Source of the DNA: Dimorphilus gyrociliatus
Taxonomy: Eukaryota; Animalia; Annelida
NCBI GenBank assembly: GCA_904063045.1
Contig: CAJFCJ010000199.1
Coordinates: 8,494 to 41,510, forward strand
Direction of reading: 5' to 3'
DNA length: 33,017 nucleotides
Numbering within the stretch: position 1 is the stretch's first letter; each line of letters opens with the position of its first letter. Below, one piece after another: positions 251 to 30,200 of this stretch. The notes under the pieces are model-generated. The model was not told the DNA's origin. It did no database searches and saw nothing but the letters and a program-made list of their open reading frames with translations. The position numbers were made by a program, and so were the translations under genes.

Positions 251-3200
251 ATGGGAGAAAGACATCCCTTGGAAAAGGCTGGATTATTATCCTTTTTTTT
301 TCTACAGTAAGCATGTTCAATGTATAGTAATTATGTTTATTGAATATGAAAAATTTATTTCAGTTGGGTATACTGTTTTTTGAAGCAAAGATCTTGGCAA
401 GAAAATTTAAAAGGTTTAGAACCTCCTAAAGAATATTCTTCTCAAGTTGTTCACCAAACTGCTAAAGAGTAAAAGCTCAATATGAAAAGAGAACAGTATT
501 CTTTCATAACAAACTTTTTATTATTTATTTCAGACATATCAATGAATATTTTAGAAAAACAGGAAAAGTTTCTCTCTTAAAAGCTCTGATGCCATTAATA
601 CTGAAACTTTATATAAAAATTATTTTGATAAGATGTTTTAGTGTAGGTTTTATTTAAAAAAAATAGGAAAATTCTTAGATTAAGATATCTCATACTAAAA
701 CATTTCAGATTTTTTGTCTGATTCTCTTACCATATCTATTTGAAAAAATTGTCAATGATTTAGAAAGCAAAGTTTCATATTCAACTTACCTAATTGCTTT
801 AGTAATGGGTAATTATCTAAAACTCTTTTTCAAATCACATTATATATATATATATATAATCAAATACATCATTGTTTTTTTCTACTTTGTAGTATCTCTA
901 CGTTTAATTGATGGTTTTTTGGTTAGATTAAGTGTCATTTTTTCTATTTATACTGGAACTAAAATTCGTTGTATACTTAGCTGTTGTTTATTTGAAAAGG
1001 TTTAATTTAAAATGGCATCCCTTTCAATTAAATAATAATATAAAGTTCTTTTTTAGATATTAAGAATGGATTACCAAAGCTACCAGCATTTAACAGCTGG
1101 ATTTATAGTATCAACATTCTCAACTGATGTTGAACAAGTTTTCATATTTTTTTATAACACAACAACCAGCATTTCTTGTATACTTTTTGTATTGGCGAAT
1201 GCAATAATGATTGGTATTTGGTATAGCTTATACGCTTCCTTAGTCTATTGTTCATTGGTTATATTTATTTTATCATTTCAAATTATAATGAGTGGTAAAC
1301 AAGGTTCATTCAGATTAAAAATTGCTGAAAGAACTGATGATAGAGTATTCTTTATGAATGAAATTTTAGCTGGAATAAAAACAATTAAAATGCTGGTTTG
1401 GGAAAAAATTTTTGTGGATAAAATCAATGCTCTTAGAAAAAATGAAATGAAATTTATATTAGAATCATATTTGTATAGAATCCTGAATAAAATATTTGTG
1501 GTTACAGGTGGTCGTGTTACACTCTTAATAGTTATAATCACAACTAAACTTGTTTCCTTAAATACAATTACTTTTGGAAGCTACACAAAATTGTTGTTAC
1601 TCTTATATGGTTCAGAGTGTGAAATATTCATGTATCTTCCCTTTTTTGTTTATTCATTAAGACAAATGATATCATCAATATCAAGACTTGAGGTATTCAG
1701 CTTCAAGAAATATTCAATTATAAAAAATATTATACATATATATATAATTATGAATATTTCCAATTAGAAAATCCTAAAAGTTCCTGAAAAGTCTGAAACT
1801 AAATATGGTGAAAAAGAATTTTCAACTAAAAGCAACAAAGTTTCTTTAAATATATCAAATGTTTATACTGGGTGGAAGGTAGAAACGTATTTTTCACTGA
1901 AATATTGATTTTTATCTGAAAATTTCTACTTTCTGTTAATATTTAGAACAGCAACAGTTCAACTAACTCTAAACAATGTCTAAATAATATTACCATTAAT
2001 AGTCCACAAGCTAATTTAATTGGAATCCATGGTAGAGTTGGTTCTGGGAAGGTGATTATTTTTGTTGTTATTATAGTTGTAATTTTCTTTTATTATATTA
2101 TTTTAGTCAACATTACTACTATCTATACTTAGAGAAATTCCCATATCATCTGGTTACATTAGTCCTTTTAAAAAAATGTCATATCTACCACAAGAACCAT
2201 GGTTATATAATGGTTCAATAAAAGAGAACATACTATTTCATGAAAAACTTCAAAAGGAAAGATATAATGAAGTACTACGTGCCACTTGCCTGGAAAAGGT
2301 TCTTTGCAATTTATATTTTATTTAAATTTAATGGAATTTCACAACAGGATATCAAAGAATGGAGTTATGGGGATGAAACTTTAGTTGGTGAAAGAGGTAT
2401 GATGGTAAGTGGTGGACAGAAAAGTAGAATATGTTTGGCAAGAGCAATTTACAGAAATGCTGACATTTATTTACTAGATGATCCATTAAGTGCTTTAGAT
2501 GAAAGAATAGCACAGGAGGTTATGTTAAAGTGTATAAAAGGCTTTTTAAAGGATAAATTAACTGTTTTAGTAAGCCACCAAATGCGCTCTCTTAGATTAG
2601 CAGACGTTACATTTGAGTTAGAAGATGGAATCTGTAAAGAAACCCAATTATCTTTAATTGAAACATCTTTAGAAGATCAATACCCAAACAAGCCAGATGG
2701 CAAAGTAAATAATAAACAATTTATTGATGAAGAAGAAAGTTCAGATGGGATGGTTGAAATAAAAACCTATTTGGAATATTTTAAAAATGGCAGCTTCGGT
2801 TTAATTGCACTTTTCTTAATACTTTTCATTCTCGTATTTCTTCTCATGGTTTCAATTGACGTGGGATTAAGTTTTTTATCAACTCAGGAATGGAGAGATA
2901 AAACTTTGTATGGTATACTATTAATGTTGTTATTGATTGCTTTCTTGGAATGTGTTAGACAGTGGATATTTATTATTAATATTTCAATGAGCTCAAACAA
3001 TATTCACAACAATTTATTCAAAAAAGTAATGACTTTACCAATGAAATTTTTCAATGCAAATTCAAAAGGAAGAATTCTAAACCGATTTTCCAGAGATTTA
3101 TTTTTTGTAGATTCCATATTAATTGATACATTTGATCAAATAATTTTCTATTTTGGACAAACATTTTTTACAATACTAGTGGCAATTTATAACATGGTCT

Positions 3201-4556
3201 ATCTTATAATTCCATTCTTTATTTTCTGTTTTCTTTTGGTATTTTCATTTCTAAAATTTTCAACAAAAACAAGTGAATTGAAAAGATTAGAAGCCATAAA
3301 AAGAACACCTTTATATGAACAATTAGACGATGTAACTAATGGCATAATCACAATCAGAAACTTTGAAAAAGAAGAAACATATATGCAAAAATTTTATAGT
3401 GCCTGTGATAATCATACAAGTGTTTCTTTAATTTTAGAATCTTTCTATAGATTTACACAGCATATATATCTCACAATTAATATTGGTTTCATTACAATAT
3501 TAATAATGTTTGCTATTTGTTTTTCTTCAAGTTCAAATTACATACTTTTGTCAATTCTTATTTCTTATCTATTTAATATCTCAGAAATATTTCAATTTAT
3601 TTTGAAACTTTTATCAGATTTTAATATAATGGTAAGAAAAAGAAACAAATTTCAATTTTTTTTTAATAATTTTTTATTACAGATGACTTCTATTGAAAGA
3701 ATAATATATTACACTTCACTTGATTCTGAATGTAAAAAAATAGAAAATGATCACCAAATATCTCAAAAATGGCCTGAAAATGGTCAACTTGTTTTTAAAA
3801 ATGTTTCTCTAAAATATGATAATACACTACCATGGGTTCTTAAATCTTTGAATATAGATATTTCTTCAGGGGAAAAAGTAAAAATTCTTTAAAGTTGTTA
3901 AGTAGGACACTTATTTATATACCATTCATTTTCAGATTGGTGTTGTTGGAAGAACAGGAGCTGGGAAAAGTTCATTGATAAATGCACTGTTTCAATTAAA
4001 TGAAATTCAAGGTGAAATTCTGATAAATGGTATAGATATTGTAAAAAATGTCGAGTTACAGCAAGCAAGATCAGTTTTAACAGCTATACCCCAAGATCCA
4101 GTTCTATTTTCAGGATCTCTGAGATGGAATTTGGATCCTCTAGATAAATATACAGATGATGAAATTTGGATTGCTCTCCAAAAAGTTCACTTGTCTGAAA
4201 AAATATTCAATTTGAAACATGGCCTTGATTCAATGATTACAGAAGGTGGAAACAATTTAAGTGTTGGAGAAAAGCAACTATTGTGCTTAGCTAGAGCTCT
4301 TTTAAGGAAGAGTAAAATTTTAGTAATTGATGAAGCTACAGCAAATGTTGATATTAAAACTGATGAGGCAATTCAAAAAATTATAAAATTACATTTTACC
4401 AAATGTACTACAATAACTATAGCTCACAGATTAAGCACAATCAAGAATTCTGACAGAATTATTGTTATTGATCAGGGTGAAATTGTTGAAATTGGAAGTT
4501 TCATTGAACTTATGGAAAAAAAAGGATATTTTTACAAATTAGCTAAAAATAAATAA
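251..4556 (+). CDS. ABCC4: ABCC4/MRP4-like ABC transporter (short ABCC without TMD0), multi-exon, apparently intact
   Basis: ATG at 251 opens MGERHPLEKAGLLSFFFLHW, matching the ABCC lasso N-terminus. Exons join in phase across GT-AG introns (e.g. 307-363, 469-533, 2299-2348, 3632-3682, 3878-3935). NBD1 has GRVGSGKS, QEPW, VSGGQKSR and IYLLDDPLSALD. TMD2 has GRILNRFSRD and R+P+Y motifs. NBD2 has GRTGAGKS, IPQDPVLFSG, LSVGEKQLLCLARALL, ILVIDEATANVD and IAHRL. Stop TAA at 4554-4556. Subfamily assignment is from motif recall. Confidence 0.93.
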
Positions 4557-17227: not shown

Positions 17228-20200
17228 ATGAAAATTTACGAAATTACTATACTACTGATAAAAAAAGTGGAGATTGAAGGAGTTTTAGAGATATATGATG
17301 ATGAAAAATGGTATCCAATCAATATATTAACACTCAATGCACAGGAAGTAAATCTTTTATGTCAAAATTTTGGATATTTATCTGGAACCATTGTTGTAAA
17401 TCAAGTAAAAAGAATATTAGCATACAAGGAACATGTTTATTATGATATTCAATGTTTGGAGGATGATTTATACATTCATAATTGTACATTTCTAAGAGAA
17501 GCTTTTACAGAATTAATGAAAATGTAAACAAAAATAACAGAAAAAACACATTCAATTTTTTTAATAAGATATATGAAAAATTAATAAATTTGGTCATGTG
17601 ACCAAACAGCTCAAATTGAAAGAGATAAATTGTTAAAAACAAAAATGGAATGGTTTAATTATTTACAAAAAATTGAAAATTTTTTTCAATATTAATATTT
17701 AAATTTTATTTTAAAAATAATTGAAATTTCAATTTTCTTAGAGACAGAAATATGAAAAATTAAATTCATGAAAATTATTTTATAAAGTGTTCAAAAACAG
17801 AAAATTCTGGTTATTTTTAAAAAAAATGAAAAAAAAGAGTTTGAATTTTTAAAAATTTAATTTATAGATTGTTCACCAAATGCTCAACTGAAAATATTTA
17901 ACACGTGTTATTACATTTTTTATGAGAAGGAAAAACAATTTGTTGGAAAGTATTGGGAAAAATGTAAAGAAAGGGATTTGAATATTATGGATGAACCTCT
18001 TAATTTTGGTTCAAGAATTTTTCAATTATTATTCTATAAGAGAATATATCATTATTCATTTTCAATTTCCAATGCTGACTTACAAGATATTTATTATTCA
18101 AAAAGGTAAGACAGGAAGTATGGATTATCCATTCCAATAGGTAATTTAATGTCACGGTAGCAAAAATTTTCTCTCTTAATTTAAAAATTTTGAACAGCAA
18201 TCAAAGAAAAAGCCAACGCTACTCTAGCAACTCCGATGGATATGCCTTGGAATTTTTGGTCAGGATATCATATACAGGTAAAGAGGAGATGAGGAACATT
18301 TAATTATTAAATCATGCAAATTAGATAAATATTTGTTTTTATAGACAAACTTTAAAATTAGAATGGAGAATACTGTAATTAAACCTGAAACATTAAAAGC
18401 TTATGCTAAATATACAACTACAAACTATCCAACAAGTAAATGCTATCTTATTGAAAGAGCAACATTGCATATTCAATTTATAAAAAAATCTGTTTCGTGT
18501 AAACAATTACAAAAAAGTTTTCTAGTTTGTCAAAAAATTTCAAGTAAATTGGTGTTTTTCTTCGTTTTTTTATTACTTTGTTTAGTCACTTTAAATTAAA
18601 TATTAGAAAATAATTCATTTAGTATGGATATTTGGAAAAAAAGCCTATTTCTTTCAATACCGTGTCCAAAAAATACTTTCTATTTTTCAAATGAACATAT
18701 TTGTATTTCATTGGTAGAAGTTTGTAAAAGAAATTTTGATTGCTTTGATGGAGAGGATGAAATTAACTGTACAAACATTTTAAGATTTCAATGCCAATCA
18801 ACTAACCAATTAGTGCCGTATCAAAATGTTTGTGATTATAGATATGATTGTAATGATAAATCAGATGAGATCTATTGTGGTAAGACAAGTATTTATCATC
18901 AATTTCTTACCTCTCTAAACATATTATCTTTCCTAGAATACAAAAGTTGCTTATCTTCCCAAAAGTTATTAATATTCAATAATTTTTGAATAAATTAGCA
19001 AAATACCAGTTTTCACTATATTCAGATTGTGTAAAAATGGACAATGTTTAGATAGAGATGAATTTTGCAATAAGGAAATAAATTGTCACGATTTAAGCGA
19101 TGAAGACTGTAGAATTTATAGTTCCAATGAAACTAAATCACTAGGTGAGTAATATTTCTAAATTATTGCATTAAAATTGCCTAATACCGCCATTTTGTAT
19201 ATTAGGATGTAATCCAAAAACTCAATTTATATGTAATGGTTTATGTGAGACAAAAGATATTCTTTGCGATTTTGTATACGATTGTATCGATGGAATAGAC
19301 GAAGATATTCTATACTGTGACAACAATTTTAAATTTATCTTATCAAAAAGGTTGGAAAATATTTTCAGATATTAAATGTCTTGTAAAGAAAACATTAAAT
19401 TATAGATATGAAAGTATTAAGGAATCTAAAACAACTTGTAGTCTCTGGTATAATTCAATGGGAAATTTAGGTGTTAGAGTACGAGAACCGTTTTCTCTTA
19501 TCAAATATTGTGGAAGAGAGAATTGTTTAAAAGTTCAATTTCTATGCCAATCATCAAGATATTGTATATCAATTGAACAAGTTTGTGATGGTATTAATCA
19601 TTGTTGGTATAATGATGATGAAATGAATTGCGGTAAAACATAATTGGAAATTGTTGACAATAGAAAAAACCCTTAAAAAATTCTTTATCATCTTTTTTAA
19701 AGAAAATTTCAAACCTCAAGGTTATTTTAAGTGTGAAAAAGAGAGAAAATACATAAATATCAGTAAAATTTGTGATGGAATTATTAATTGTAAAAGAGGA
19801 AATGACGAATTATACTGTCCTATCAACAGTAGGAAAATTCTAAAGGAATGTTCATTTCAACTATCTTATCAATATCAATGTAAATCAAACAAAATGGAAG
19901 AGGAGAGGGAAGAACTTAACCTCTATTCCATTCCTGTTCATATTAAAGGATTACATGTTATTGATTTTAAATTGAATAATTCAATAAGCTCAACGGAAAT
20001 AACAAAATTAATAATTGTAAATTGTGAATTGGAAGATTTCTACAAAAATTTCAATATTCCAAATTTAATTTATTTGAATTTAACAAAAAATAGAATTAAA
20101 CATTTTAAATATTTACCAAATAAAAGTACTCTAATTCTACAAACTTTAGATATTTCCTTTAATCCTATAAGTGAAATCTCTAATCTGATTAGATTTGTCT

Positions 20201-22198
20201 TCCTGAGAAATTTAGATTTGTCATATACAAAACTAAATTCATTGGATAAAAACACTTTTCTAGAGGTTAGAATGCTGACCTACTTAAATATGAAGGGTTG
20301 TACCATAAATAGAATAGAAGAGAGTATCTTCTTAATGAATAACATATATTATCTGGATTTAACATCAACAAAACTTCCTAGCAGACAACTAAAGAATTTA
20401 ATTAAGCCTATGAAAAAGGTGAAAGTTTTAAAAAGTAATTACTTTAGAGCATGTTGCTATGCCTATAAATATTCAGAATCAATTGTTTCATGTAAGCCAT
20501 CTTCTTCAGTTGTCAATACATGTTCTGATCTGATAGCGTCTAAATATTTAAATATCTTTTTATGGTGTTTTGGCCTACTTGGAATTATTTTAAATTTAAT
20601 AACATTAACATTTCATTTTATATCAGTAAAGAAGAAATATAATATATATTACATAACAATGTCATTTTCTGATCTGTTAATTGCAACCTATTTAATTACA
20701 ATTGCATCAACTAATCTATATTACAAAGGCAATTTTTTCGAATACGAAGATAACTGGACTTTTAGCTATTTATGTAAATTCATTGGAAGTTTAATGAATT
20801 TTTCATTACTATGTTCAACAGGAAGTTTATGCCTAATTAGCTTGCAAAAATATTTTGCAGTTGTATATCCAACGAAACAATTTTTCAGTTTAAAAAGTTA
20901 ACATTTTCATATCAATTCTTAATATATTTGCGAGTTGTTTCTTTGGTTTCTTCCCAGTGTACTATTTCCAGGCAAGATTCTAGAGAGAGAGAGAGACGGA
21001 GAGAGACGGAGAGTGTTCATTTATCCCTATTTTCTACCAAAGGAATATTTCAATAATTCACCAATTTGTTTCAAACTTCACATAAGACGTGAATCAAATA
21101 TTTCATCATTATATTCATTTATTATATTTGGAATTGGGATTTTTTTAATATCTGTTATTAACAGTATCTTCTATTTAAAATTATTCCTGCAGTTAAAGAG
21201 AGCAGGAAGTTGTTTATGATAAAAAATATTACAAAAAAGTCATTATCTAAATCTATATATTTAATTATTGTCTCAAATCTTCTCTGTTCAATACCAATTA
21301 CATTTTTAGGTAATAATAATGAAGAATTAGGCCTAAAATAGCCTAATTTCATAGTGGTTTGTTAGTTTTAGTCCCTAATCTAAAAAAATGTGTTTTTAGG
21401 AATAATTTCAATTGTATTAAATGTAAGAATGAGTAATGATCTATACTCATTGATTATCCTTGTTTTAGTTCCTATGAATTCAGTTTTGAATCCATTTTTT
21501 CATTCATACGGAGAAATTATTAAGAAATTTGAAATTAGACGGAAGAATATCATGATTCAAATGTATTAATATAAATTTTATTTTCTACTATAAAATTCTT
21601 AATTATACTATTTCAAACAAAGAGAAACAAGGAATAAGGAAATGCTGAAAAAGGAACGTTAAACGTGTAAGTTATTTCCGTTTCCGCTTAATTTTAAAAT
21701 ATATATATATATATATATATATATACATGCATGTGTGTGTGTGTGTGTGTGTGAAAGGTCTAGAACTTTGCCAACTAATTAAAAAGAATAATTTATACTT
21801 TAAACATAAAAAAGAATTTAAATGCTTAAATTCATTTTATATGTTTCACAATCTCTTTACAATTGTAACTATTTCAAAAGAAGTATCATCTAGTATATGT
21901 TTTTGTCATGAATATAATTTCAGTTTTAATGGTAACCTTGACCTTAACATGATATTTTACAATGTAAATATTTCTTCTACAAATTAACATAGTAAAGTGA
22001 GATTTCTTGTTTTTTCTGAAGTAATAAATTTGAAAATATTTTCAGTTAAAGAAAAATAGGCTTAAATTCATGATCTTTTCAAAGAGTTTAATTCCTTTAG
22101 AAGAGGAAATGATAATGAATGATATCTTTGCTTTTGGCAAACTTGTTTGTTCATTAGTAAGAAAGAGAATACTGAGCATTAAATTAATACAAAAATGA
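17228..22198 (+). pseudogene. GRL101/LGR-type receptor (SRCR-like + CTL-like + about 6 LDLa + LRR + 7TM + kinase-like tail), disrupted; 5' end uncertain
   Basis: SRCR-like EGVLEI..LLCQNFGY..IQC..NC (17228-17520). CTL-like CSPNAQLKIFNTCYYIF..FLVCQK (17869-18543). LDLa repeats with CxDGxDE (18624-19820). LRRs followed by CCxxY..CxP..CxDL. TM1-TM7, including SNLLCSIPI and PMNSVLNPF. Lesions: +1 shift in A5 at 20892-20896, -1 shift near 21213, stop at 21555-21557 ahead of the tail, stop at 21985-21987, and a further frame change before 22109. Confidence 0.85.
21699..21753. repeat. Compound microsatellite (AT)n-(GT)n inside a presumed intron
   Basis: Read directly from the sequence. It lies between a GTAAGT donor at about 21667 and the AG that precedes the tail exon. 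Confidence 0.95.
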
Positions 22199-22558
22199 AA
22201 ATAATTCTAAAAATAGAAACTGTTTTTTCTAAGTAAATATCTATTTGAAGTTTATTGATTTATCATCTCTGATTTACATCAATAAAGTATAGGCCTATCT
22301 CAAAGATTACTTTTAATGTTGCTTGAATTCATATATCTTGCAGTTAATCTTTTATCGATAAACGCTAGGTTTATTTTATTACTGCCCAACAAAAGTCAAA
22401 AAAGTTTCTATTATAACATATAATAATTATCACGTGACTAAACTCTTATACCCTCTTTCTAAAGCAAGAGAAAATTATTTTGTAGGCCTAAGAAGAAACA
22501 GAAGAAGAAGAATTTACATAGTTCATACTGTTTATTGAGTTATTTATAAACAATTTTC

Positions 22559-22765
22559 GGATGTGGTAGAAAACGGCCATAAATGTATGGTTTTACCCTA
22601 ACCCTAACCCAGGCCTTGTTTTTGCCTAACCTTTTTGAATACCCCTAACCCTTAGATGGGACCCTCCTAAGAACATATCAACAGTTATCTTATTCCTCCT
22701 AACCATTTCCCAGGCTGAAATCTAACTTTCAAATATTTCATTTATGGCCGTTTTCGACCGGTCCC
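22559..22765 (+). mobile_element. Mutator-type MITE, 207 bp, with a 9-bp TSD and internal TAACCC hexamers
   Basis: TSD ACAATTTTC at 22550-22558 and 22766-22774. Inverted repeat GAAAACGGCCATAAATG / CATTTATGGCCGTTTTC. Internal ACCCTAACCCTAACCC. Confidence 0.9.
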
Positions 22766-22899
22766 ACAATTTTCACTCAAACACACATTTGCTTAGTTAT
22801 GCCATTTTGTAGAAATTTCAAATTCCTTTGTACACTCAAGTAATGCTAGATTGATGTTTTTAAAACAACTCTCGTAGAAATAGCCGACAATTTACATTT

Positions 22900-23807
22900 T
22901 TAAACTGCTTTTTCCATTTTGAAACTGGTCTGTTACGAAAAGAAAGAAATGGTTGAATTTTTGGGAGAAAACTATAAAATTTAGCGATTTTTTACCTTGT
23001 TACCAAATGTTAGGAACTTAAAGCCATGGATCACGTGGGTTATGACGTATCCTTCACTTTTGTAGAGTTTAATGGCCAATTCGTTAGTTTCATGAACAAC
23101 CAATGATATTTTCTGAAATATTTTTTCAATTGTAAAATATTCAATAAAATAACAAATTAATACCGTAGCATTCCTCTGCTTAGCTAGACATTCAGCGTAT
23201 TTTAGAAGATTTCTTCCTATTCCCTTCCTTTTATATTTGTCAGAGACAGTAAAACATTCAAAAATTTGTTCATTATCAACCATCTGCTTATTCAGTAGAT
23301 CAAATGACATAAAAGAAAGAATCATTCTGAAAGAGTCTCTTATTGGCAATGTTTTAAATATCTGTGAAAGAGGTAAGCTCTTTTCTGATCTTGAAGAGGG
23401 AAAAATAAAACAATTGAAAATCATTAATTTTATATAAAAAAATAAAAATTTTCCTCATCTTACTTGTTTGAATCTCTCAATTTAAAAATTCCAGCTATTT
23501 CTTTGTTATCATCTTTACTCACAGCTAAAATGATATTTTCCAGATTCTCTTCATCATGTTGAAAAGATTTTTTAAAAAATTGAACAAGATTTGGAAATTC
23601 TTTCTTTTTTACAGCATATGAAAAATCGTATGAAAAACCATCAATCACTAATTGTGCAGCTGCACCTTCCTCACCCTTCTCCATAGGTCTAATATTTATA
23701 TTTTTCATTTGAGGAAACTTGATATCGTCCCTTTTATCATTCTTAGGCCTATTTACGACTGTTTCAACCCTTTTAACAGTATAAAATGCCGCAACAATAA
23801 TATTCAT
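22900..23807 (-). CDS. GNAT-family N-acetyltransferase, 4 exons
   Basis: Has NIRPMEKGEEGAAAQLV, the acetyl-CoA motif VSDKYKRKGIGRNLLKYAE, ISLVVHETNELAIKLYKSEGY, and a terminal FKMEKAV*. Three GT-AG introns join the exons in phase (GTAAGA..TTCAAG, GTATTA..TTTCAG, GTAAAA..TAACAG). Confidence 0.9.
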
Positions 23808-24225
23808 TGTTAATCTCCTTGTCTCTAAAAAATACGTCTGCTACACAGTATTCTAACTGGTTTTTATAGAACGATAAAAGAGGTATTTCACAACGACGCG
23901 CAATTTCTGAAATATATCTGTCAATTATGATAATGGCAATCTACTTTTACATACACTGTCTGCTAGTATATCTCTCTATCTCTATTTCAAATAGGCCTAT
24001 AGTTCTATCACATAGATTATAAAAATCTAAAGGTTACAATTCTATACTATGCATAAAAAGATAATAGGATAACATTCTTTTGCGAATTAATCTACAAAAG
24101 TGAAAGTCGATTAAATTACTTGGAACATATTTAATCTAAAATAATAAAACAAATCAATCGATTGAGATAGGCCTACTATACAGTTTAGTAATTATGAAGA
24201 AGGGATATATAGAAATATTTTGGTA

Positions 24226-27200
24226 TTATTTATTACAAAAATGACTTTTTAACTGTAGAAATTTTCTAGCAATATTTCCCATTGATAAGATATCATTTTT
24301 CTCACAGGAAGCAGTCTTGTTTAACAATTCACTATATTTTAAGTAATACTTTTTATTACTTTTACATTCATAAATGTCTTTTTCACAAAATTTTCCATCC
24401 AATGAAAAATTATTTTCATGCAAGAATTCAAGAGATTTGAACATATGAACTGTACATTTAAAATAATTGGTATTAACAAAGAAACAATGTGTTAAATGTG
24501 TCTTTTGAAAATTAAAATTTTCAATTCTTTTACAAATGTGAAATTGGTGGTAATTTTCAAAAACATGTATAACTGAAATAAGTTTGTAAAGTTTGTCAAA
24601 AATTTGAATATGATAAGAATTTGTACCTCTTTTTTGAGTATTATTAACCAGTTGATTTTCTTTGTGAATTCTGAAAGAAAAAACAGTAAAATTAAAAAGA
24701 CAAAAATAAACAAACACCTACCTTTCTTTTACCTTTGTCAATTTTTTTAATGATATATGATTCCCATAATCACTAAATGAAAGGAGAAATTGAGTTATAA
24801 CTGTCTCCATTGGTACAAAAAGTAGGATAAATATTATATATTTTTCTTCAGTTATATTGAAATTTATAAAAAATGAAGCATTTCCTATTTTTTCAAAAGA
24901 AACAAATAAAAACATGGTTGACCCAATTAATATATCTATAACCTATAAGGCTAATTGTTAGCCATGTAAGAAAACGATAAAAAACAATAATAAAGAGATG
25001 ATAATTGATTCTTCTTTTTGAAAGATTTAAAGATGATCTAGAGTCAGAAGTCTTTCTAATAAATATTAATAATCTCAGACAAAAAAACAATGATAAACAA
25101 TTAAAAAGAGGAACGACAATTGAAAACGATAAATAATGCAGAGTTTTCAAATCTTTTATATTTTGAGTATTTGAAAAAATTTGAAAACAAACTGGACTTT
25201 TTGTATAAACATCCACATTGAATATCATTGGTAGAATTGATGGTACAAGTGAAATAATCAGAATCATTATACTTGTTGGATATTTATGTTGGATGATAAT
25301 AGAGGATTTAAATAAATTTGTAATTGCGAAATATATTTGTAATAGAATAATACAAAATACAATTGTTGAAAAGTGTAATGAAAATGTCATAAATGATGAC
25401 ATTAAATGGCAAATTGTACTACTCCTCCATAATTCGTCGAATTCTATGTAATCGTTTTTCATGACTATATCCATAATGGGAAGTGTAAATGTTAAACATG
25501 TTCTCAATAAATCATTTATTGAGAATAATAATTGAAAATATTTAGTTGATTTATACAAATAAATATTTAAAATTAATGAGAAAACATTTGAAAACAATCC
25601 CACAATGCCAGTAATCCATATTAGTGTTCTTATTGCGATGGATGAGAATAATCTAGAACATTTTAACAATCTCGATTTATTGGGCCTACACTCGACATTT
25701 GGACCAAGAATTTTTGTAGAAAGGCAGCACAAGTGAAAACTATCACTTTCGATAAATTTCATGCTCTCTAGGCCTATAAGAAGATATTTCTTTCTAAATG
25801 TTGGTAATACGGTATTGGTTAATACTAATTTCGTTAATTTTGTTAATATTTTCAATGGATTTAAATCAATTTGAATTATTTTACATTGAGTCATTCGAAG
25901 TAAATTTAAATTTGATATTGATGAAAAATCATTGGAATTCAATTTTTCAATTAAAGTTGATGATAAATCTAAATATTTTAAATATTTACAATTTAAAGTT
26001 CTTATAAAAATCAAATTTGAAATTGAATTTTTAGACAAATTTAAATATTGCAATAACTTTACTTCTCCAATAAACAATTGCCCTGATATTTTATCATTTA
26101 TTTTGGTGTTAATTAATGATAAATGAACAATATTTGGTGTAAATTTTGTTGAATATTCATTAGTAGTATTTTTTATATTTGTATTTTGAATTACTAAAAT
26201 ATGTAAAGTATTTGGATGTTTAAAGGCATCTTTTGGAATTTTGCCAATTACTTCAAGACTTTTAAAAGTATTTCCATAGTTACTAATCTCAACTAATTTT
26301 GTTGTTAAATTACAATACAATTTGAAAAATGATGTTTTTCTACAACTTCCAATGGGAGGAACATTGCGGAAATTACAAAATAATTCGTCACTTCCGTAAC
26401 GGCAATCATAAATTCCATCACAAACTCTATCTGGTAAAATGTAAGTAGTTTGATTTTTACATTTAAAAAAACCCTTTGGATGGAATTGATGACAGTTTTC
26501 TTCATCATCACCATGGTAACAGTGTTTTATGCTATCGCACACCAAATTCATACCAATGCAATAATTTTCCCTATAGCATAGATATTCATCAACTTTGCAG
26601 GTTTTAACTTGACAAGACTCGGTTTTAGCAAATAGGTTAGTCTCTGGTATGCCTATAGAATTTATTGCAAAATAACAATTCATAAGACTGAAGTCAGTGT
26701 GTTCAAAATAACTTTCATCTTGACAGTTGCAATCACATTTTCCATCATTTTCATAAGAGAGTGGCAAGCAATAAGTTTTACAAAGAAACTGACTGGCTTT
26801 GTTACATGCTGAAGCATTTTAAAAGGGGTCGGGAAAAAACGTCCCAGGGTGGGAAAAAACGTCCTAAAGGTTGGGAAAAAACGTCCCATGCCTGGCTAAA
26901 GATATACTTGGCATAATTATTGATACTTTTAATCAGAAATGTTTTTCTCTTTGCTGTTTACTTCATTTATAGAATAAAATATTAATATTTTTGAAAAAAG
27001 GTATATGTATTGTGATGTTTTTACCAGTTTTCTCTGAATTATGTAATGCTATTAAAAGAGAAATAAGTTATTTCCTTGTCTTGTCTGTAAGTGAAAGATA
27101 AATTTTGCATTTCTTGGCATATATTCAGGCTAATTTGTTTTTTAAGCATTGAAACTCTGGTATTGATTTGGTTTATTGAATATTACAAGATTATACATTT

Positions 27201-30200
27201 TTTTAAGAACCCTTCTCTCCAGTGAGTTATTATTTATAATTTTTGTATTTGCAGCCATATTTGATATTTGAAAGTTAATTTATTTTTGCAGAAACATTGA
27301 AAATACTTGGATTAAGCATTCAATTTGGACACCAGATTGTTGGTCTGTATTTGGTCTTGCTATCAGGACCAACAATGATGTTGAAGGATGGCACATAAGA
27401 ATAAATGAAAAGACTCCTGCAAAAGGCTCATTTTATATGCTCATAGATATTTTAAAACAGGAATCAAGTCTTATTCCAGTTGTAGAGATACTTCTATCAG
27501 AAAAAAGGCTAAAGAAGTATCAGAAGAAAAGTGTCATCCAGAAGCAGAACCAAGTATATGCTGTTTGGAATGAATACAGATTGGGAATGATTACATCTGC
27601 TGTCCTCTTGCAGAAGATTGCATTAATCTATTCAAAATAATTCTCAGTGTGTTAACATACTTTTTACTTTATTCTAGTAACTTTTAAACTTTGTATAACA
27701 TTCTTGGCTTTTTTCATTTTTAATACATTTTAATAAACATATATTAATTATTAATTATTATATTCTCAGTATATTGCCATTGGTTCCCAAAATAGAGCAA
27801 TCTTTTTTAAAATTCAAATATCTTTTCCCACTACTTGTTTTTCCCAACCTTGGGACGTTTTTTCCCAGGGACGTTTTTTCCCAAGGACGTTTTTTCCCAT
27901 ACTCATTTTAAAATAGTCTAATAATTAGAGAGCGAAGGAAAAAAAACCAATTATTTACATTGTTCAAAATATTCCAAGATGGCGTCGTCTTGATTACAAA
28001 TTTCGTCACTGCTATCTAAACAATTTCTTTCATTATTACAAACATTTTCCTTTTCGATACATTGGAAATTATGACAATGGCTGAAGTTTTTATCATGTAA
28101 AATTTTAATTTATAAAATACTCATTTGCCTTTTCTCACATTTTACAAGGATCTCTTGCTAATTAAAAGATTTTGAATATATTAGCATCTCATTAGCTGAC
28201 ATTATATAGTAATAATCACAAACCACACAATTTCTCATCGGAACCATCTGGACAATCACTTATAAAATCGCATATTCTTTGATAAGATATCAATATATCA
28301 GGTTGGGATAGACAAGAGAATTTTTGATAGATATCTTGTGAACAATTTTCTTCATCCTCACCAAAATCACAATCATCCTTTCCATCACAAACATAAGCAA
28401 TATTGATAAAAATCTCATTCAATTTACAAAAGAATAAAGTCATTCTTAATTCTGTTTCATTCTTTTTAGAAAGAATATTGAATAATTCTAATTTTTCAAT
28501 TGTAGACTCCTCCTCTTTTTTTTGTTTTTTAAAAATATATTTATATTATTTCTATATTTAATTTGAATTATACTTTGAATTTTTTGGCAAATGAATGATG
28601 TCTTTTCAAAATACCCCGATTTTGATTTCACACGATAAAAGAATGACTTGTCACATTGAAATAATACTATGTCTAAAGCTTCATTATTATAATCACTGAA
28701 TTGTGAAAATATATCAAAAATAGTCTCCTCCCATAAATAAGTTTTTGTAACAACTTTCTAGAACAATGAATATAAAAAAATGATCATAAACAGTAATTTT
28801 AAAGATTGGGTAATTTCTCAACTGGAAAAGTATATTGATAACATAGATTTTCATTATTAAAATAATTTTCTGACATTGAAAAATATCCTCTTTTATTTAA
28901 ATTTTTCGATTCCGCAAACTGATGTAATTGAGATTTTTAGACTTTTTTTTATTGTTGAATTCTCACTTCTAAATATTTACCTCTGATAGAGAAAGAGGAA
29001 TATCAACAGAAAGTCCACTACTAGTAAAGTATAGCTCTCTTCCATTAACCTTTTTCTTTGTCAAGTATATTGGATATAAATTATATTCTAATGTGCTTGT
29101 AAATGATGATTCATGCCCAGAAAGTAGTATGTTTGAAAGAAATGAAAAGAGAAAAACTTTATTCATTGTTGGGAAATCTGCCAGTGTTAAATTCAAGTTT
29201 GTACAGTAATTTATATTGAGATAAACATCTCTGTCGTTAAAATTATCATTGATATAGTAGCAAATGTTATTTATACTCATGACAAAATGACCTTCACATT
29301 CTAGAAATAAATTTTCTCATAAAAAGGTATTCATTATCACTATAAATACCTTCTCTTTTGGTTTTTGAACACTCAATGAAATATGGATAGAGTGCTTTCA
29401 TTCTATTACTTCTATCCACAAAAAAAGAGAAAATTTTTAAAATATTTACCTGGGAAAAAATGAAAAAAATTTACCTGGGAATTAATTTACAATCAGAAGC
29501 TGTTGTTGAATTTTTGAAACATTTTATTGTCTCGAAAAAATACTGTCCATTTGTCACACTGTCTTCTTCAGAAAAATCTGTAAATTCTACTTGACTTTTA
29601 ACAATTGTACCCGAAGTAAAATTAAAAAATGAGCATATTTTATTCAGTGTTGAACTCTCTAAATATTGAATATTATACCAAACATCTTTCCAAATCTGAA
29701 AGAAGGATAGAGAGACAGACAGACTAAATAATGTCCTATGTTGTTAAGACCTAACCTGTAGACTTCCTTTAAAAGTTGAAAATGAATGCTGATCATTTAT
29801 AAACAGTTTTCTGTGCTCTGAATAAAAAATTCTAGTAACTGAAAGAAAAAAAACAATACACTTGAATATTTTTCATTGTAGAAAATATTCCAAATACATT
29901 TTGTTGGTTTGTCTTCACATGAAACTGTTAGTCCGTATATTCCTTTTTTTTTAGGCTCAAACAGATTGCAATCAGAAAATGTAGAACATTCTCCAAAATA
30001 TGGAATTATCTAAAATAAATAAGAATTATGTAAAATTTTTTGTTCTTGCTTTTATTTTATTCTCACAAAATCAGTTATTCTGAACTTAATGCATGTTGAA
30101 AAAATTGCAGTTTTGGATATCTGCTCACAAATGTATTTACAGGGATATAAAGTTTTCAGTTTTGTGCGAAATGCAGGCACTGAAGGACCCAATGTTTTGG

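Follow-up and report, generated by a model that had tools for sequence, protein, structure and literature searches.

A spliced 129-residue cytoplasmic tail with kinase-like motifs on an LDLa/LRR/7TM receptor of Dimorphilus gyrociliatus

Fusions that join G protein-coupled receptors (GPCRs) to kinases, known as GPCR-TKL/K and GPCR-TK, have been described in choanoflagellates and sponges but were not found in other metazoans, and none of these fusions has been functionally characterised (PMC12716839). Oomycetes and amoebozoans possess GPCR-bigrams, for example GPCR-PIPK and GPCR-TKL, with complete kinase domains (PMC6033456, PMC5784254). Here, a receptor gene with a kinase-like C-terminal tail is described on the minus strand of a 33,017-nucleotide stretch of the annelid Dimorphilus gyrociliatus (contig CAJFCJ010000199.1 of assembly GCA_904063045.1, positions 8,494 to 41,510), referred to as the window, in whose numbering all coordinates are given unless stated otherwise. 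The original prediction for this locus, made from the sequence alone, proposed a GPCR fused to a degenerate kinase-like domain and took oomycete GPCR-PIPKs to be the only known GPCR-kinase fusions, a view that the choanoflagellate and sponge examples have made out of date. The locus would share with these fusions a kinase-type module placed C-terminally to a seven-transmembrane (7TM) receptor. It differs in that the described fusions carry complete, Pfam-recognised kinases on 7TM domains that are not of the LGR type, whereas the present receptor is a bilaterian, rhodopsin-type LGR with LDLa modules and leucine-rich repeats, and its putative kinase module would be a short, dead remnant that Pfam misses.

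LGR and relaxin-type receptors are thought to have short, disordered tails from which they signal via G proteins and arrestins. The LGR type C or GRL101 group, which includes Lymnaea GRL101, RXFP1/2, and arthropod LGR3-5, resembles the present receptor in its ectodomain of LDLa modules and leucine-rich repeats on a rhodopsin-type 7TM domain; GRL101-type receptors are orphans that have been discussed as candidate receptors for insulin/IGF-like peptides (PMC8286064). In the searchable literature on GRL101-type, LGR, and relaxin-family receptors, a kinase-like tail is not mentioned. The third system for comparison is the kinase-homology domain (KHD) of receptor guanylyl cyclases, a catalytically dead module which, like the tail described here, lies just inside the receptor membrane. 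The cyclase KHD is complete and bilobal, with approximately 250 residues; it retains nucleotide binding and precedes a dimerisation helix and the cyclase, whereas the present tail comprises 129 residues, has no N-lobe, ends at an αF-like helix, and is attached to a 7TM receptor.

Structure of the receptor gene and its tail

The stretch examined forms the 3′ end of a gene that is expressed and encodes an LDLa/LRR/7TM receptor of the LGR type C/GRL101 kind, 'GRL101-type' being used here for the architecture only. In Pfam searches, a minus-strand open reading frame (ORF) of 624 residues (24893-26767) matched Ldl_recept_a in two stretches (2.7e-8) and LRR_8 (2.1e-5), both families lying N-terminal to the 7TM region. 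No Pfam 7tm_1 match was obtained for this receptor copy; its rhodopsin-type, LGR-like character is seen through homology to LDLa/LRR/7tm_1 proteins, the 7TM region aligning with LGR-like proteins (P0001-P0010) without gaps in TM1-TM7. Contigs from three public sequencing runs were placed on positions 21300-27000. One run (X2) is of genomic source, and the other two (X1, 2017, and X3, 2020) are RNA-like, as judged from their exon-only coverage and, for X1, from three GT..AG joints in a neighbouring acetyltransferase gene.

The original prediction held that, after TM7, the receptor is spliced in frame over a canonical 51-nt intron into a single open exon of about 147 residues. The intron is indeed removed in contigs of both X1 (depth 10.6) and X3 (depth 18.5), which carry exactly the predicted joint (24670→24722) with zero mismatches to the locus and no other joint at this place; the splice is in frame, and an unspliced reading would halt at the TAG at 24718-24720. 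The frame beyond it was correctly taken to be open, but it is not one exon, since a further 54-nt intron, also removed in the X1 and X3 contigs (joint 24572→24627), had been read as coding. The tail is therefore 129 residues long, is encoded by a 44-nt mini-exon and the last exon, and is positioned after helix 8 (Table 1). Both peptides to which the original prediction had drawn attention, including KNDILSMGNIA, are present in the spliced frame. A candidate counterpart of the mini-exon, flanked by AG and GT, can be read at the equivalent place in a convergent paralogue of the receptor in the same window.

The spliced tail frame contains no stop in 129 codons at 23% GC, with 23 and 4 stops in the other two frames, and none of 20,000 shuffled versions of the tail stayed open (p < 5e-5). 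An AATAAA at 24229-24234 overlaps the final two codons of the last exon. The tail has no proline, only two glycines, and many phenylalanine, histidine, cysteine, tyrosine, and leucine residues, a composition which appears folded and aromatic-rich and unlike that of a disordered GPCR tail. Together, these data support a substantial, non-disordered cytoplasmic tail that splicing joins to the receptor.

Table 1. Coordinates of the receptor 3′ end, of the kinase-like blocks of its tail, and of the tail of the convergent paralogue.
Feature	Position in window	Strand	Basis
Large receptor exon (LDLa modules, leucine-rich repeats, TM1 to TM6)	24943-26808	-	ORF, Pfam, RNA contigs, alignment
58-nt GT..AG intron between TM6/extracellular loop 3 and TM7	24885-24942	-	predicted only
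Exon with TM7 and helix-8 region	24722-24884	-	X3 contig no. 19 covers 24722-24832 with zero mismatches; alignment
51-nt GT..AG intron with in-frame TAG (24718-24720)	24671-24721	-	RNA joint 24670→24722, CT..AC ends on the plus strand
44-nt mini-exon, first 14 tail residues (IHKENQLVNNTQKR)	24627-24670	-	both flanking joints RNA-confirmed
54-nt in-frame GT..AG intron	24573-24626	-	joint 24572→24627, CT..AC ends, X1 and X3
Last exon: 115 tail codons and TAA stop (24226-24228)	24226-24572	-	open frame, P0003 conservation, RNA over 24541-24572 only
αE-like helix and catalytic-loop-like stretch (YFKCTVHMFKSLEFLHENNFSLDGKFCEKDIY)	24370-24465	-	conserved block; P0003 and tail+P0003 profile align to 8fx4_D
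APE-like YSE, then αF-like helix (KNDILSMGNIARKFL)	24253-24342	-	conserved D, I, G; homologous block aligns to 8fx4_D
Paralogue tail, convergent gene (exons 21760-21963 and 22046-22195)	21760-22195	+	translations; P0003 match

The GC content of the window is 22-33% and its introns are very short, those of the receptor gene measuring 51-74 nt. The predicted intron between TM6 and TM7, which is crossed by no RNA contig of X1 or X3, is the only one of the GT..AG options to leave one open frame, and its removal leaves TM6-TM7 gap-free against the relatives. A 34-nt GT..AG stretch within the last exon was considered as an additional intron and rejected, being far below the size of the others and shifting the frame off the conserved C-terminal motif. 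Contigs of X1 lie on the large exon at 25354-25512, 25598-25825, and 26274-26808, the last stopping at the AG acceptor at 26809-26810. Further exons are expected upstream because the large exon opens within an LDLa module, and the gene continues in that direction since an X1 contig extends 355 nt past 26808, outside the stretch on which contigs were placed. More LDLa-like modules occur in minus-strand frames at 27300-28700; as the RNA contig passes 26808, these are probably earlier exons of the same receptor gene.

Within the 7TM domain the activation switches are eroded (24943-25620 region). The E/DRY-type motif (ARY) reads LQIY and intracellular loop 2 (ICL2) is four residues shorter; TWLT stands at the CWIP position, and the NPxxY-type motif DPLLF is replaced by TQFLL. 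This erosion of the DRY and NPxxY switches, together with the apparently additional upstream ectodomain exons, sets the receptor apart from GRL101-type receptors. On sequence grounds, the eroded switches would fit either an output centred on the tail or a drifting gene.

Conservation and kinase likeness of the tail

When 1.84 billion cluster representatives were searched exhaustively with HMMER, a single relative of the last exon was returned, P0003, a 116-residue ORF on a 2.5-kb Logan contig, with 40% identity (E 2.5e-11); it most likely represents the final exon of a related receptor. When P0003 was compared with the window by tblastn, it matched the intact tail at 3e-20 and the tail of the convergent paralogue at 2.6e-5, and the paralogue tail matched the intact tail at 0.003. 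The columns conserved in the three tails, F-HE-NFS(F/L)-(D/N)G and NDI--(F/M)G, represented in the paralogue by HEYNFSFNGNL and MNDIFAFGKLV, are the very motifs that the original prediction had singled out as kinase-like. The tail is conserved across these sequences and is therefore a trait common to at least these receptors. A metagenome scan with the tail alignment gave 600 pattern matches and no relatives. The 624-residue ORF retrieved two distant LGR-like proteins, both short-tailed, including P0001 (LDLa/LRR/7tm_1, E 1.7e-16), and all eight relatives found with the 7TM region of P0001 are likewise short-tailed.

The convergent paralogue (18624-22198, plus strand) has LDLa, LRR, and 7tm_1 (2.3e-7) matches and is left almost uncovered by the RNA contigs. 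A GA-rich stretch around 20900-21000 breaks up its coding ORFs, and positions 21700-21755, directly before its tail exon, hold a (TA)n(TG)n microsatellite. At a related LDLa/LRR receptor locus in another assembly (L001, GCA_029979845.1), the longest ORF of the LDLa/LRR/7TM gene starts, at 3518-3650 of that locus, with approximately 30 histidine codons, and the called gene begins after them.

The resemblance to kinases had been proposed for subdomains VIa/VIb and IX. In a search of 177,635 PDB sequences, P0003 matched best (E 0.59) to the pseudokinase of guanylyl cyclase C (GC-C; 8fx4_D), which was also the sole hit for a profile built from the tail and P0003 (E 0.29), both in the noise range by score. 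The weakly scoring alignment is collinear over some 75-95 residues and places the LH/HG block, APE, and the D..G of αF in register, as the original prediction had laid them out, without reaching significance: IVKGIKFFHESNFSFDGKF is aligned to the end of αE and the catalytic loop, YNE of P0003 falls on APE, where YSE of the intact tail is placed through the family alignment, and EKEDIKEFGLIVREMI is aligned to αF. The spacing from the Glu to the Asp is 12 residues in the tail, in P0003, and in GC-C alike. The likeness to the cyclase KHD further comprises the 'LH' end of αE and the absence of the HRD Asp, with a glycine after the H/D position (HGRL in GC-C; DGKF and NGNL here). At the HRD position the tail reads LDG, where cyclase KHDs have HG, and at the DFG position ECK; only the APE Glu and the Asp and Gly of αF are kept. 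An earlier assignment of YLKYSELL to the DFG region was dropped, as the GC-C alignment sets YSE at APE and ECK at DFG. As had been stated from the sequence alone, there is no HRD, DFG, or Gly-loop in the tail; nor does it contain a GxGxxG.

Language-model features point in the same direction. Both the tail and P0003 were recognised as protein-like (scores of 2691 and 2848, respectively), and nearly all of the named clusters closest to them were Pkinase, PK_Tyr_Ser-Thr, or Kdo (the tail at 0.88, P0003 at 0.93-0.89), nine of the ten best named cluster matches of P0003 coming from a single clan. For the unnamed cluster nearest to the tail, the model resembles kinases with template modelling scores of 0.54-0.61. 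An out-of-frame ORF of the same DNA, used as a control, had a recognition score of 1072 and a top match of 0.71, with no kinase, and composition therefore does not explain the lean towards protein kinases. This lean is more independent evidence than the GC-C match.

Several observations weigh against a kinase origin or against the wider proposal built on it. No Pfam kinase family was matched at E up to 10 by the tail, P0003, or the paralogue exons, a check that the original prediction had named and that turned out negative. PDB searches with the intact tail, a four-row profile, the paralogue exons, or half-profiles gave unrelated matches (YopR, Mek1 FHA, MavC) or none; the top match shifts with the query variant, which places the GC-C match within noise by score. 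That match also quantifies the resemblance noticed at the outset and is not independent of it; it is counted as moderate support. AlphaFold2 models of the tail from four-row alignments were all-helical with predicted local distance difference test (pLDDT) values of 40.5 and 43.4 and are unusable for assigning a fold. The tail is at most half the length of any kinase-like domain. The search of the 1.84 billion representatives and a separate profile search with the tail alignment, which returned P0003 again as the single protein found, gave no link to better-kept tails, kinases, or other phyla, and tblastn found no tail exon downstream of the receptor at L001. The part of the last exon that encodes the kinase-like motifs (24253-24465) lies outside the RNA contigs, which end at about 24541, 32 nt into the exon and still in frame, so that this part rests on the open frame, conservation, and the AATAAA. 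Coverage holes of a similar kind occur in undoubted exons of the same gene, for example at 24929-25310, and the gap over the tail is therefore not evidence against it.

In view of the above, identification of the tail as a kinase remnant is partly supported: it is plausible and suggestive, and not statistically proven in this copy. Descent from a protein-kinase-like core, running approximately from αD through αE and the catalytic-loop and APE positions to αF, is considered rather probable from these comparisons, the closest likeness appearing to be to the KHD of receptor guanylyl cyclases. The original suggestion of a pseudokinase such as the cyclase KHD does not hold in that form: with 129 residues, of which only some 50 precede the αE-like helix and none lie beyond αF, the tail could not accommodate an N-lobe or αG-αI, and a full bilobal pseudokinase is excluded. 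Nor does Pfam recognise a complete catalytic kinase domain after the 7TM region of this receptor. The tail would be at most a dead, trimmed αD-αF core.

The mRNA is spliced after TM7 and helix 8 across two short introns, via the mini-exon, and so acquires the 129-residue tail. In the proposed explanation, the ancestral module would have lost its N-lobe, with the Gly-loop, the VAIK Lys, and αC, and everything after αF, while the β7-β8 hairpin and most of the activation segment would have been deleted; compared with GC-C, the eight residues of the hairpin and at least four activation-segment residues are absent. As there is no ATP site, such a tail would neither bind ATP nor catalyse and could act only by binding. 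It may serve as a docking or dimerisation scaffold beneath the 7TM bundle, recruiting a cytosolic partner or holding it in position, with an output that would be G-protein-independent or modulatory, in keeping with the eroded DRY and NPxxY switches. The scaffold role is a weaker proposition than the kinase descent, and for the explanation as a whole (a spliced-on tail, kinase-core descent, and a scaffold role) the case is regarded as evenly balanced. A broader evolutionary scenario, put forward as a tentative and rather unlikely extension, is that bilaterian GRL101-type receptors keep, as small 3′ exons, the dead αD-αF core left from a kinase formerly joined in full to the receptor, in an ancestor resembling the GPCR-TK or GPCR-TKL fusions, and that this relic would be a scaffold for signalling independent of G proteins, to which it might, for instance, recruit a live kinase or Hsp90-Cdc37 as cyclase pseudokinases do.

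Alternative explanations for the tail

The best-surviving alternative, less probable than kinase descent but still a serious possibility, is that the tail is real and conserved but not derived from a kinase, representing a lineage-specific, mainly helical module in which the two motifs are a chance likeness in K/N/F-rich sequence. The lack of significant Pfam or PDB kinase matches, the dependence of the top PDB match on the query variant, the all-helical though low-confidence AlphaFold2 models, and a length too short for a kinase domain would all be expected of such a module. Chance likeness is less easily reconciled with a GC-C match that spans three ordered blocks at equal spacing, or with the placement of two tails, 40% identical, among kinase clusters by language-model features, where the frame-shifted control was not placed.

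A decaying receptor copy, in which the tail exon is spliced without selection in a pseudogene in the making and the kinase-like motif is a functionless relic, is considered improbable. Features that would agree with drift are the eroded DRY, CWxP, and NPxxY motifs with the shortened ICL2, the absence of the 7tm_1 match that the paralogue still gives, tail motifs less canonical than those of P0003 or the paralogue (SMG versus FG), and a low RNA depth of approximately 5-18; set against these are about 790 codons that stay open over four exons in DNA of 23-29% GC, the precise removal of both confirmed introns, the improbability of an open tail by chance, and the AATAAA kept at the stop. Outright decay is disfavoured because the frame is open and splicing is precise. 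Least likely of all, and very improbable, is that the last exon is chiefly part of another transcript or of an alternative 3′ end while the dominant mRNA stops soon after TM7 with a short tail: the RNA contigs do end near 24541, and a donor (AAG/GTAAAAG) that can be read from the sequence 11 nt upstream of the confirmed one would give a tail stopping after 8 codons, but the sole joints seen, in the 2017 run as in the 2020 run, involve the 24722 donor together with both mini-exon junctions, a contig enters the last exon for 32 nt in frame, neither a promoter-like gap nor a separate start is apparent, and the next gene begins only at about 23942.

Neighbouring sequences and implications for receptor signalling

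Between the receptor and its convergent paralogue lies a gene for a GNAT acetyltransferase (22800-23942, minus strand) with Acetyltransf_1/7 matches, which is far more strongly expressed than the receptor and has RNA-confirmed GT..AG introns at 22930-22995, 23113-23163, and 23390-23463. A very high-copy repeat at 22559-22766, between the end of the paralogue and the GNAT gene, reaches a word depth of approximately 40,000 in the genomic run, is abundant in the RNA-like run too, and shows many variant letters and rearranged joints. In the receptor intron upstream of 26808, a 15-nt motif (GGGAAAAAACGTCCC) forms two clusters in inverted orientation, with three copies each (6 matches versus 0.02 expected), which bracket approximately 1.07 kb at 26831-27898; in the genomic run this region reaches a word depth of about 7,500, whereas single-copy DNA lies at about 85, and the element looks like a very high-copy transposon or miniature inverted-repeat transposable element (MITE) with repeat-bearing terminal inverted repeats. 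Elsewhere in the window (1066-4556, plus strand), exons of an ABC transporter of the full-transporter type alternate between ABC_membrane and ABC_tran domains.

The locus provides an RNA-backed example of a mini-exon structure that is useful for annotation. If the proposed explanation is true, standard gene models truncate such genes at the stop just past TM7, since the tail is reached only through a 44-nt mini-exon. A dead kinase remnant on a bilaterian LGR would be a fresh variation on the theme of GPCR-kinase fusions, invisible to domain-based search. It would represent a new output module for a major class of hormone receptors and would offer a hint at how the orphan GRL101-type receptors signal.

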